In this document: piece after piece, positions 5,532 through 17,595 of the stretch | Layout of the letters: each line of letters opens with the position of its first letter | How positions within the stretch are numbered: position 1 is the first letter of the stretch | Source: Thalia democratica | Taxonomy: Eukaryota | Reading direction: 5' to 3' | DNA length: 64,000 nt | Assembly (NCBI GenBank): GCA_965202585.1 | Contig: OZ241826.1 | Location: 31,124,001 to 31,188,000, forward strand | The notes under the pieces: generated by a model | Database searches by the model: none | The model's input: only the letters and a program-made list of their open reading frames with translations | What the model was told of the DNA's origin: nothing | Position numbers and translations under genes: made by a program

Positions 5532-5652
5532 TGCAAATAAGTTCCAAACCTTAAATTAATTAAGTATTTGGCGTTCCCTTTGCAAAAATTAAAAATCTTG
5601 GCTTGCTATGTGTTTTTCACCAGCTTAGTTGAGTTTAGTTGAGCCAACATAC
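5532..5652 (+). ncRNA. H/ACA snoRNA, SNORA10/snR37-like (28S psi2944 yeast equivalent), divergent 3' end
   Basis: 5' hairpin GCAAA/TTTGC with pocket AGTT + CGTTCCC pairing 28S GGGAACG-UG-AGCU; H box AAATTA; ACA at 5647. Confidence 0.7.
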
Positions 5653-5730
5653 AGCTTGTTTACATAAGAGGTTGCAGTAAAGGTGTAAAGGTTAGAAATA
5701 GTTAATCAGATATGAAAGTTTTTTAGTTAT

Positions 5731-7654: not shown

Positions 7655-7851
7655 AAAAACTAAAATCTAATTAATTGTTTACTGTTTTACATCTTGTAAA
7701 CTAAATTAAATGCTGTTATATATGAAAACACAGATGCAGTAAGAAGTTGATGTTAAGACAGAACTGACGAATGGTCATTACTTCAAATAATCAATGAACC
7801 ACAGCATATGAGTGCCAGGTAAGACATTTTATATTTTGAAAAAAAAGTAAA

Positions 7852-7963
7852 CGCAAATAAGTTCCAAAGCTTTATTTAATTGAGTATTTGGCGTTCCCTT
7901 TGCGAAAATTAAAATTCTTGGCTTGCTATGTGTTTTTCACCAGCTTAAATGTGATCTACATAC
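7852..7963 (+). ncRNA. SNORA10/snR37-like H/ACA snoRNA, copy 2
   Basis: As 5532; H AAATTA, ACA 7958. The 3' pocket TTCTTGGC could pair 18S GCCAAGAA, but the spacing is non-canonical. Confidence 0.8.
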
Positions 7964-8157
7964 GTTGTCAATTGACATTTTATTACTAGAATTAATTTTT
8001 ATATTTATTCTTACTTGACCATTAAATCGAAAAAAGTTTTAATTGACCCCAACTTTTAGAATTTCCTTGTGTTTCTTCAGAGCAAGCATGAGTCCATCCC
8101 AGTTTTAATGTGAATTTAAATTATAAGTTAAAAAAATAAATTTTTTCAAGTACTATT

Positions 8158-10749: not shown

Positions 10750-11217
10750 AATTAAAACAAAATTGAAGTAACATTGTTTTATAAACTAACGAAGAAAAAA
10801 TTTATTACAGGCAAATACCATGATGCAATAATAACTGATTAATGCTGGTTTCACTTGAAGTCAAGAAAGAAAGGTAAATTTTAATTCTAGTTTTTATTAA
10901 TTATTAAATATATTAATATTTTTTTGCATTAATTAAGCCGACTAGTTTTCTTCTTGTATAGATTATTAGCGACATACGGTGCACACAGAAAATACAATAT
11001 AGAGCTTGAAAAATGAGAGATATGTAACTCTTCAAGGCTGATTTGTGACAATTTTATAATAATAACCATTAAAACTGACGATTTAAGTCAACATATTTTA
11101 TAATTAAAAAAATTTTTAATACTTACCAGATTTCTTTGAGAACAAACGCTTCAAATAATCAATGGACTACACAAACATAAGTATTAGGTAAGAAATTTTT
11201 CTTGAGAATAAAGTAAG

Positions 11218-11331
11218 CGCAAATAAGTTCCAAAGCTTTATTTAATTGAGTATTTGGCGTTCCCTTTGCGAAAATTAAAATTCTTGGCTTGCTATGTGTT
11301 TTTCACTTAATTTTAAATGTGAACTACATAC
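11218..11331 (+). ncRNA. SNORA10/snR37-like H/ACA copy 3
   Basis: 5' hairpin identical to 7852; 3' upper stem altered. Confidence 0.75.
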
Positions 11332-11520
11332 GTTGTCAATAGACATTTTATTGAATGTAATATTTTTAATATGTATATATTTATAACCTATGTTTGATTT
11401 TACAATAATTTTACAGAACACAGTAGGAAACCACCACTCGAAGTACTTGTTGTTGATTCATTTAGTTTCAAGGTGAGTTGCATTATTAAATTTTATTATA
11501 ATTTTTTTTTTAAATATCTT

Positions 11521-11580
11521 AAACATGATAGAAAATTTTTGTATCTGATTTCACTGACGATACACCCAGCTCTCTGAAAA
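11521..11580 (+). ncRNA. snR69-like C/D copy 2
   Basis: Near-identical to 8158-8218. Confidence 0.7.
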
Positions 11581-11759
11581 TTAAAAAAAAAAAACATTTT
11601 TAAGAAAAAATAATAAAATCATTGATTAAAAAGTTTTTCTGTTTCAGATACCTGCCAGCGACCACCAAATAAGATCAAACATGGCTGAGCAGTTATTCAC
11701 AGTTTACTTTCAGTGGTAAGTAAAATTTTATATTATAACATGTATATTTTTAATTAAAT

Positions 11760-12597: not shown

Positions 12598-12787
12598 TAC
12601 ATAAATCAGTTATTAATATTACTTGTAGTTTATATTGAAATAAACCTAATAACTATTTTTATAGATATTTCCATCTAGCTTTACCATCTGATCTTTGAAG
12701 AAACAGTTGGTGTTCAACGGAAGAAAAAAAGAATGTTGATGGTTAGAACAGTTTTAGAATGTATTGTTAAAAATTGTAACTTAGTTA

Positions 12788-12857: not shown

Positions 12858-13051
12858 TTTAGTTTACAACAGCTTTCATTAGGTTAATTATATTTGTGTA
12901 TCAATAAATTGATTTAATTGAAAATATTTTCAGGTATGACACATTGGCAACTACCACCCAAAACTCAAGCCATCCTCTCAAAATTACACAGTGAATAGTC
13001 TGAGGTAAGTAGCATATGGTAACTTAAAGTTTATAAACTGAATATGAATAT

Positions 13052-13648: not shown

Positions 13649-13821
13649 AAATTTAAACTTAATTCCATTTGGTGCTTTCTTTTTTATAAAAAGATCAATG
13701 TTTTTTTTTTACAGATTGCCATTCTAATTGATGAGGTCAAATTTTGAGGCGTCAATATCTCACCAAATTGTCAAGTCACCACAAAATTGTAAGTTCGTTT
13801 TGAATAAATGTTTCTAAAAAT

Positions 13822-13933
13822 TGCAAACAAGTTCCAAGGCTTTATTTAATTGAGTATTTGGCGTTCCCTTTGCGAAAATAAAAATTCTTGGCTTGCTATG
13901 TGTTTTTCACCAGCTTAAATGTGATCTACATAC
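13822..13933 (+). ncRNA. SNORA10/snR37-like H/ACA copy 4
   Basis: Near-identical to 7852-7963. Confidence 0.8.
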
Positions 13934-14115
13934 GTTGTCAATTGACATTTCATTAAATGAATTTTTTTTTTATGCCAATAAGGATAATTTTATTATTTTT
14001 CTAACAGTTAATTCTTTTTCAGAATCAATAAAGGAATACAGATCTTCAATTAGTCTGTACTGTACAGAAACAGCAGGTAAATGTAATACTTTTTTTTACA
14101 AAAGTTCTTATGTTA

Positions 14116-14251
14116 GGCATTGGTATTGAGTTTTAGCTATTTTTGTTGGTAAATAGATAAAAATTATCCGATGCTATAGAAATATCAGAGAGAAATGTGT
14201 AATTGTTGCTTATAATATGAGTGAATAATATAAGGGATCTCTCATACATTT
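14116..14251 (+). ncRNA. H/ACA snoRNA guiding 18S psi1244 (SNORA36/snR36 site) and psi1692 (SNORA70 site), human numbering
   Basis: TTGAGT/AATTA pair UAAUU-UG-ACUCAA, 14 nt from H box ATAGAA (14176). TGTGTA/AAGGG pair CCCUU-UG-UACACA, 14 nt from ACA (14246). Confidence 0.8.
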
Positions 14252-14412
14252 GTATTTAATAATATTTAGTTTTTCTTTGAAAGTTTCCAAAATTTAATGA
14301 ATTTTTTTTTTTTAGACGCACGTTGAATGTGAATAATCATAAATCACAACGACTCCTTGAAACCAGCTTCCAAAGTAAGAAGATTTTTTTTATATTTATG
14401 CATTAAAAATAC

Positions 14413-16038: not shown

Positions 16039-16223
16039 AAATTTATAACAATAAAAATTAAGATTGATTTTGCACGTTGATAAAATATTTTTTGTTTTCA
16101 GGTATCTTTTTCTGTACAACAAATGATCACCTGTTGAGACAAATATCAAAACACGGCCCACCAGTGCCGAGGTAAATAATTTACCTTTTATACAATGATT
16201 ATATAACTGATATTTAAAATAAT

Positions 16224-16525: not shown

Positions 16526-16689
16526 TAAATAATTAAATATATTGATTTTTCAATTTAAATTTGATTAGATAATATATTGTTCTTATTTTTACAGATTGCT
16601 GTTGCAACTTGGTACATCTACCTTGGGCGTGTGTACTAAAAAGTAAGTTGTTGATATATCATATTGTATAGTTTAATTAAAAATATAAA

Positions 16690-16817
16690 CGCAAATAAGT
16701 TCCAAAGCTTTATTCAATTGAGTATTTGGCGTTCCCTTTGCGAAAATTAATCAGTTGAGAGCTGTGTAATTGTCAAGTAGATAATGCTTGGATGATATAA
16801 GGATCTCTCAAACATTT
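16690..16817 (+). ncRNA. Chimeric H/ACA snoRNA: SNORA10-like 5' hairpin plus SNORA70-site 3' hairpin
   Basis: 16690-16750 matches 7852-7912; 16751-16817 is homologous to 14185-14251 (GAGAG..TGTGTAATTGT..ATAAGGATCTCTCA-ACA). Confidence 0.75.
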
Positions 16818-17595
16818 TTGAACTAGTAAATTAAGTATATTAGTTTACAATTTCCTGTTTTTACTGAATTTTTAAAACGCAGATGCAGCCACAAGGAGTC
16901 CTCAGCACATGAAGGCGCCTGACGGTTGTTCAACAGATCTCTTAGTTAAATATTTGTTTGTGTGTGAAAATAAACTTGAAAAACTTCGAAACTGTTTGTG
17001 TTGTTTAAAAAATAGTTTACTTTAATGTTTATATTAAGCGCTTTTAAAGAAGTTCAATTGTATCCAAATATAAAGGTCTTCACGTTTGTATAGTAATCTA
17101 AATGATAAGATATCAAAATTCATTCATATTTTGAATACCCTATTGACTTGTAGTGTCGTTTGCGCATATTATAAACCAGTATGTCAGTTTTGTTATATAC
17201 TAAATTATTATCTGTACTGATAGAGCAATGTTTGATAATAAGGTTAAGATTTCTTAGACTAAGTATATGCTTCGCATCAGATTTATTGTAAAAATTCCCT
17301 TCAATAAAAAGTCAATCGCAAGTCGTAAAGTTTTTGAATTTTTTGGATATTTGCATAAATGCGCACCACGTAATACAAATAGGTAGGCAGAACAGAGTAC
17401 TCACACGCGAAAAAGAGCACACCATAAAAATATTTCATGCCTGGTTGTGCTATACCAAAAAAGCACTTTGCCAGTTATATTTACAAACTTCTTTGTAATA
17501 CTTTATGTAAGTTTCAAAAGTATGTGTAAGACCTTTTTGCTCTTCATCATGAACTCTAATATAGTAAAATTTGTTTGGTGACCACCGAATTTTAT

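Follow-up and report, generated by a model that had tools for sequence, protein, structure and literature searches.

Box H/ACA guide RNAs consist of two halves, each of which works independently of the other. In vertebrates, SNORA63 (E3) guides two uridines of the large subunit rRNA (LSU), 28S-4390 and 28S-4491, which lie 101 nt apart (Deryusheva et al., PMC6984369), and in yeast U2944 is guided by snR37, an RNA for which an additional scaffolding role has also been reported (PMC13015370). Shuffling of snoRNA halves as domains has been postulated, in what the authors themselves termed speculation (Deryusheva, Talhouarne and Gall, 2019, PMC6984369); the fungal RNAs HACA_2 and HACA_31 carry homologous second hairpins behind unrelated first hairpins (PMC5824354), and recombination of box C/D halves has been proposed in fungi, for Neurospora (PMC2780460). 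Movement of target sites between non-orthologous snoRNAs has mostly been inferred from cross-species target predictions. Here we describe a 128-nt gene of the salp Thalia democratica which, as in the published cases, couples one guide domain to a non-orthologous partner. Whereas those cases were inferred across species or families, in the present case the donor types and the putative product occur together in one host gene, both halves show homology at the sequence level, and the junction is localized to a few bases. The homologies described below support the view that positions 16690-16817 are chimeric, two distinct H/ACA guides having been fused at the hinge; the locus would thus be a concrete case of DNA-level domain exchange, whose value lies in the coexistence of donor types and product and in the resolved junction. 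Our main reading, to which we assign a probability of roughly 0.65, is that it is a genuine intronic box H/ACA gene which arose when two unrelated guide genes, both lying in a tandem array of introns that carry snoRNAs, were joined at the DNA level.

The window, by which we mean the whole 64,000-nt stretch of DNA that was analyzed (contig OZ241826.1, positions 31,124,001 to 31,188,000), contains no N anywhere, and its first 17 kb are occupied by a plus-strand gene whose many short exons are separated by introns with one snoRNA each. The fly Uhg genes and the human GAS5/SNHG genes likewise hold one snoRNA per intron between short, poorly conserved exons and grow by tandem duplication, but the resemblance is limited to this setting, the chimera not being a feature of those genes. 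Within the host gene SNORD18, SNORD31, SNORD83 and SNORD61 score above their Rfam thresholds, with many C/D and H/ACA matches below threshold, and self-comparison of the window revealed old tandem block duplications of 71-79% identity whose enclosed snoRNAs are 88-99% identical. Contigs of three runs (X1, X3 and X4), none of which is on record as RNA, were aligned over a 6-kb stretch (5951 letters). Aside from a contig matching the chimera, which is described below, those of run X3 were restricted to exon-sized pieces (11646-11714, 12665-12740, 12933-13002, 13709-13788 and 16099-16169) whose ends coincide with GT/AG exon borders, and one of them fuses 12740 directly to 12933, the SNORD18-bearing intron being absent. 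Because the contigs of this run join exons at GT/AG borders, X3 appears to be RNA-derived, and its contigs directly support transcription and splicing of the host gene.

The chimeric gene occupies the final intron of the host gene, at distances of 47 and 65 nt from the 5' and 3' splice sites, respectively, and the terminal exon after 16882 contains AATAAA. In the following, A-type denotes the SNORA63-like double guides found elsewhere in the host gene, and B-type denotes the guide at 14116-14251. The features of the intron and of the gene are as follows:

16643-16882, plus strand: last intron of the host gene, with GTAAGT ... CAG splice motifs read from the sequence and the chimeric snoRNA as its sole snoRNA
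16690-16817, plus strand: chimeric box H/ACA snoRNA gene, 128 nt, hairpin-hinge-hairpin-tail, from fold and homology
16690-16742, plus strand: 5' hairpin of SNORA63/snR37 type, with lower stem 16690-16695 / 16737-16742 and upper stem 16702-16729
16696-16701 and 16730-16736, plus strand: the two strands of the 5' pocket, UAAGUU and CGUUCCC, from the fold
16744-16749, plus strand: H box AAAUUA, which fits ANANNA, apparently derived from the A-type parent
16748-16751, plus strand: junction zone in the hinge, where homology switches from A-type to B-type
16755-16811, plus strand: 3' hairpin, homologous to 14188-14243, with lower stem UUGAGAG / CUCUCAA at 16755-16761 / 16805-16811
16769-16796, plus strand: upper stem of the 3' hairpin with a bulged G, from the fold
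16763-16768 and 16799-16802, plus strand: 3' antisense elements UGUGUA and AAGG, from the fold and from alignment to the B-type
16812-16814, plus strand: ACA box directly after the lower stem, followed by a 3-nt tail, UUU, at 16815-16817

The predicted fold of 16690-16817 (minimum free energy -27.2 kcal/mol) comprises two hairpins, a single-stranded hinge between them and a tail, which is the box H/ACA layout; its z-scores were modest, at -1.65 for the whole RNA and -2.25 for the 3' hairpin. The ACA stands 3 nt from the predicted 3' end, and the homology of the X3 contig stops at 16816. Relative to the 14-16 nt range for the spacing between pocket and box, the first pairing base of the 5' hairpin is placed 14 nt before the H box, while that of the 3' hairpin is 13 nt from the ACA (15 nt counted from the upper-stem base), as compared to 14 nt in 14116-14251.

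The guides of the two putative parental types occur in the host gene at these positions:

7852-7981, plus strand: A-type double guide, its 5' hairpin one base from that of the chimera, with a sub-threshold Rfam match to SNORA63
11218-11347, plus strand: A-type copy with the same 5' hairpin as the 7852 copy; Rfam SNORA63 31.5 bits, E 0.08
13822-13951, plus strand: A-type copy whose intron neighbors that of the B-type snoRNA, with four private differences in 5' hairpin and hinge
5533-5660, plus strand: fifth A-type copy, absent from the list of the sequence-only reading, its 5' hairpin 90% identical with six changes
14116-14251, plus strand: B-type H/ACA snoRNA, single-copy within the window, with 5' hairpin 14116-14175 and H box AUAGAA at 14176-14181
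14188-14243, plus strand: 3' hairpin of the B-type snoRNA, a predicted guide for the small subunit rRNA (SSU), with its ACA at 14246-14248

The sequence-only reading, an earlier account made from the letters of the window, had identified the 5' hairpin with the guide at 7852, 11218 and 13822 and the 3' hairpin with that of 14116-14251, and both identifications held. Across 16690-16750, which covers the 5' hairpin and the start of the hinge, a single loop base differs from the copies at 7852 and 11218. By local alignment, and by blastn restricted to the window, the identity was 96.9% to 11214-11278, 90.9% to 7826-7912 (an alignment taking in the upstream flank, the hairpin proper having one mismatch), 93.3% to 13823-13882 (four positions differing) and 90% to 5533-5592 (six positions differing). 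The remainder, 16752-16817, is identical to 14186-14251 in 50 of the 67 aligned columns (75%). Both relationships far exceed those obtained with shuffled sequences, none of 1000 shuffles scoring as well in either case: the 5' half scored 115 against the A-type 5' half (shuffles about 14 +/- 2.5) and the 3' half scored 47 against the B-type 3' half (shuffles 14.2 +/- 2.6). The reciprocal comparisons gave no similarity between the 3' hairpin of the chimera and that of the A-type (403/1000 shuffles as good), and only chance-level similarity between its 5' hairpin and the 5' hairpin of 14116 in the same kind of shuffle test. When 13790-14320 and 16643-16882 were aligned globally with MAFFT, the comparison which the sequence-only reading had proposed, the deletion was misplaced and the result was uninformative, whereas local alignments of the same sequences showed the mosaic.

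The junction was located in the hinge, as had been claimed, with the switch in homology at 16750. A-type letters reach 16750 and B-type letters (AUCAG) occupy 16750-16754, such that at most one or two letters are common to both where they meet, which points to illegitimate or microhomology-mediated joining rather than homologous recombination. Outside the hairpins no resemblance to either parent rose above chance. The stretch downstream of the chimera had been said to resemble the sequence after 14251, a claim that did not survive the comparison with shuffled sequence (score 23 vs. 18.6 +/- 3.2, 125/1000 shuffles as good, p about 0.13), and the upstream flank compared to the 7852 intron was equaled by 128/1000 shuffles, with the remaining flanks also at chance. 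As neither flank is significantly homologous, the argument on mechanism is confined to the hairpins.

These results bear directly on the route by which the sequence-only reading had derived the gene, namely duplication, as one block, of the two introns carrying the 13822 and 14116 snoRNAs, followed by a hinge-to-hinge deletion in which the A-type 3' hairpin, the exon and the B-type 5' hairpin were lost; taken as recent, this route would make the locus a fresh snapshot of the event. The two parental types do lie in adjacent introns, with exon 14023-14078 between them, and a deletion of this kind with its junction in the hinge would yield exactly the structure of the chimera. However, homology is confined to the two hairpins, the flanks being at chance and the self-comparison of the window showing no neighboring block match around the chimera. 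Freshness is further contradicted by the 25% divergence of the 3' hairpin from 14186-14251, which includes compensatory changes, and by the existence of further copies of the chimera, with about 10% divergence and hinge indels, both elsewhere in the same organism and in an organism that is itself roughly 10% diverged. In addition, the 13822 copy is the least similar to the chimera among the intact A-type copies, although its four differences, being private to 13822, leave it eligible as donor; for the same reason the donor A-type copy cannot be named. We consider this recent route unlikely.

The near-identity of the 5' half might be taken as a sign of recency, but the 60-nt 5' hairpin, loop included, is identical in the copies at 7852 and 11218 even though the surrounding blocks are only about 76% alike; the hairpin therefore evolves very slowly, and its near-identity in the chimera is not a sign of a recent event. 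It is speculation by analogy that this strong constraint on the A-type 5' hairpin might relate to the extra scaffolding role of yeast snR37 (PMC13015370). In the copy at 5533-5660 the 3' half loses similarity past about 5627, and on its sequence this copy is probably decayed or decaying. The 7852 copy matches 11218 in its 5' half and 13822 in its 3' half; gene conversion among the A-type copies was considered for this pattern and rejected, as with three sequences it amounts to private changes of single copies. In comparison to the Rfam family SNORA63 (RF00092; gathering threshold 90 bits), the A-type copies gave full-length but sub-threshold matches of 22.6-31.5 bits, and the chimera gave 18.9 bits, all of them far below that threshold. 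The CGUUCCC strand of the 5' pocket is common to the A-type copies and the Rfam SNORA63 consensus.

Targets were predicted by scoring every uridine of SSU, 5.8S and LSU rRNA against each pocket in two loci (L001 and L059), which are Rfam-annotated eukaryotic rDNA contigs from a metagenome collection and unrelated to this animal. In both loci the best site for the 5' pocket was LSU GGGAACG[U]GAGCUGG (target uridine in brackets; yeast U2944, human 28S-4491), with a predicted pairing of 7 + 4 bp (6 with a mismatch and a wobble) that involves both strands of the pocket. The adenine of the sarcin-ricin loop, which in yeast we take to be A3027, follows this uridine at a distance of 82-85 nt, placing the uridine at U2944, the snR37 site. 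The predicted LSU site is accordingly one that the 5' pocket of the chimera has in common with yeast snR37 (PMC13015370). For the 3' pocket the best site in both loci, for the chimera and the B-type alike, was SSU CCCUU[U]GUACACA (human 18S-1692), a site that was itself included in the pattern with which the rDNA had been fetched; the uridine lies 170-174 nt from the SSU 3' end, as compared to 177 nt for human U1692. Guides with shuffled arms did as well in 5/300 cases for the 5' pocket and 9/300 for the 3' pocket, and in 12/300 for a third control. Thus the two targets named in the sequence-only reading fit, as top-ranking predicted pairings in the rDNA of both loci.

The predicted SSU pairing of the chimera comprises 4 + 6 bp, with two guide bases (AU) left unpaired below the upper stem, as they also are in the B-type; when the pocket register was set without these unpaired bases, neither B-type hairpin had a consistent site in SSU or LSU. 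Compared with the B-type, the 3' antisense element of the chimera has lost one G and otherwise has the same letters. With the lost G, the 4 + 6 bp, the 13-nt spacing to the ACA and the unpaired AU, activity of the chimera on 18S could be weak. These features, other than the unpaired AU, together with a 5' hairpin which is nearly invariant among the copies, would also agree with retention of the chimera for its 5' domain alone, the 3' hairpin serving as a structural partner for assembly of the H/ACA RNP and guiding nothing on 18S. Such a role is improbable in our estimation, as UGUGUA and AAGG show no other change although the surrounding stem varied freely, and the SSU site remains the best match in the rDNA.

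Comparison with named families is informative for the A-type and less so for the B-type. Relative to SNORA63 the chimera has the 5' domain of the family only; its 3' domain is unrelated and is predicted to be aimed at 18S. A search of Rfam at E <= 10 with the chimera returned only weak matches to SNORA63 and ceN36-1, and no H/ACA family was matched at this cutoff by its 3' half or by 14116-14251. The human guide for 18S-psi1692 is presumably SNORA70/U70. The same uridine, CCCUU[U]GUACACA, is predicted for the 3' hairpins of the B-type and the chimera, and this target is the only feature which they have in common with the human guide. One report lists SNORA64 for 18S-1692 and SNORA70 for 28S-4975 (PMC7760958), and another lists SNORA64 for 28S-4975 (PMC6984369); SNORA64 and SNORA70 are thus assigned oppositely to the two sites, and one of the papers has the pair swapped. 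Because Rfam offers no match and the papers disagree on the human guide, the family name of the B-type is uncertain. As a separate observation, the B-type 5' hairpin at 14116-14175 folds with almost no open pocket. Target scans gave no rRNA site for it that was common to L001 and L059, and on this modeling it may be an orphan domain.

The order in which the two layouts arose can be approached through the second pocket of the A-type copies. Defined as CUUGCUAU / ACGUUG, this 3' pocket is predicted to pair with LSU AAGCGU[U]CAUAGCGA; earlier definitions of the pocket had given no such site. The site ranks at the top in L001 and fourth in L059, where it carries a substitution, and in both loci it lies exactly 101 nt upstream of the site of the 5' pocket. 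The A-type copies are therefore like vertebrate SNORA63 in being directed at both 28S-4390 and 28S-4491, and the genes at 7852-7981, 11218-11347 and 13822-13951 behave as SNORA63 orthologues, whereas the chimera retains the 4491-type pocket only. Since the A-type layout matches SNORA63 in both targets, it is the conserved one and that of the chimera is derived, and we regard the chimera as a derived arrangement on this support.

For the 3' domain alone the polarity could in principle be reversed, with the A5-B3 gene (A-type 5' domain, B-type 3' domain) carrying the 18S guide first and 14116-14251 as the recombinant, which would have received that 3' hairpin behind a different 5' hairpin. The 5' hairpin of 14116 indeed has no consistent rRNA target or Rfam relative, and there are several copies of the chimera against a single B-type snoRNA in the window. 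Nevertheless, a SNORA63-type 5' domain in front of a 3' domain that is not of SNORA63 origin would still need an exchange of hairpins (PMC6984369), so that this order costs one event more, and we hold it to be quite unlikely.

The joining of two guides that we favor appears to have been followed by copying and divergence. A 541-nt X3 contig matches 16690-16816 alone, with 12 mismatches and one T insertion and with its flanks unaligned, and is the deepest contig on the 6-kb stretch (depth 131 vs. about 10 for the exon contigs). Contigs of X1, which comes from the same organism, and of X4, which comes from another organism and whose contigs are about 10% diverged throughout, cross 16750-16752 and have an extra T after position 16750 or 16752. 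Judged by these contigs, the A5-B3 gene appears to be present in two organisms and to number at least two or three diverged copies. In the upper stem of the 3' hairpin 11 of the 12 pairs of the B-type are kept, six of them unchanged, two with one-sided and three with two-sided changes, and the bulged G is kept as well. Seventeen differences separate the two 3' hairpins; of these, 11 are located in the upper stem and loop, and the antisense elements account for just one (the deleted G). These patterns are signs of selection, and would indicate that the chimera was copied, diverged and was kept for its structure. That the 3' hairpin is 25% diverged, and that the extra copies have diverged as well, indicates that the event is old, and going by the sequence the chimera is a real and fairly old case of the reshuffling of guide halves.

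That no recombination took place at all, the 3' hairpin having converged on the B-type or the assembly having been mis-joined in the repeated 5' hairpin, is suggested by the five-copy repeat which that hairpin forms and by the about 10 antisense letters which guides for the same site must have in common, but convergence and assembly artefact were both rejected, as highly improbable, on the junction-crossing contigs, the homology scores and the compensatory changes: identity also covers target-independent parts (the lower stem with its GAGAG/CUCUC strands, the beginning of the upper stem, the bulged G and the tail), no residual similarity to the A-type 3' hairpin is seen, contigs of independent runs cross the junction, and a mis-join of A-type and B-type could not yield the chimera because its 3' half is unique sequence and not a copy of the B-type.

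Under our main reading, the 5' domain and H box would have come from a SNORA63/snR37-type guide, of which the host gene has four or five copies, and the 3' domain and ACA box from a paralogue of the present-day 14116-14251 guide. The breakpoint would have fallen in the A/U-rich hinge, by deletion or by unequal exchange between two snoRNA-bearing introns. The product would retain everything that an H/ACA RNP requires and would presumably be expressed as one RNA that acts at both sites, the first pocket pseudouridylating the A-site-loop uridine of the LSU (yeast U2944, human 28S-4491) and the second the neck uridine of the SSU (human 18S-1692). Later it would have been copied, would have diverged and would have been retained under structural selection. 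The fuller claim, that the gene is an expressed, doubly active guide for 28S-4491 and 18S-1692 which was joined within one host gene and has spread as a new salp snoRNA family, is more tentative, and we place it slightly below even odds. Were this the case, the locus would prove directly, from the sequence itself, that H/ACA domains are shuffled as whole units, and dense intronic snoRNA arrays would be a place to study such shuffling; understanding of how H/ACA RNPs work would be unchanged.

Elsewhere on the stretch covered by the contigs, depth rises several-fold over 11520-11620, reaching about 1660 in run X1 and about 2270 in run X4, and dozens of contigs end at 11577-11583 and 11618-11619 and continue into unrelated A/T-rich sequence. 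This segment looks like a short dispersed repeat within an intron.
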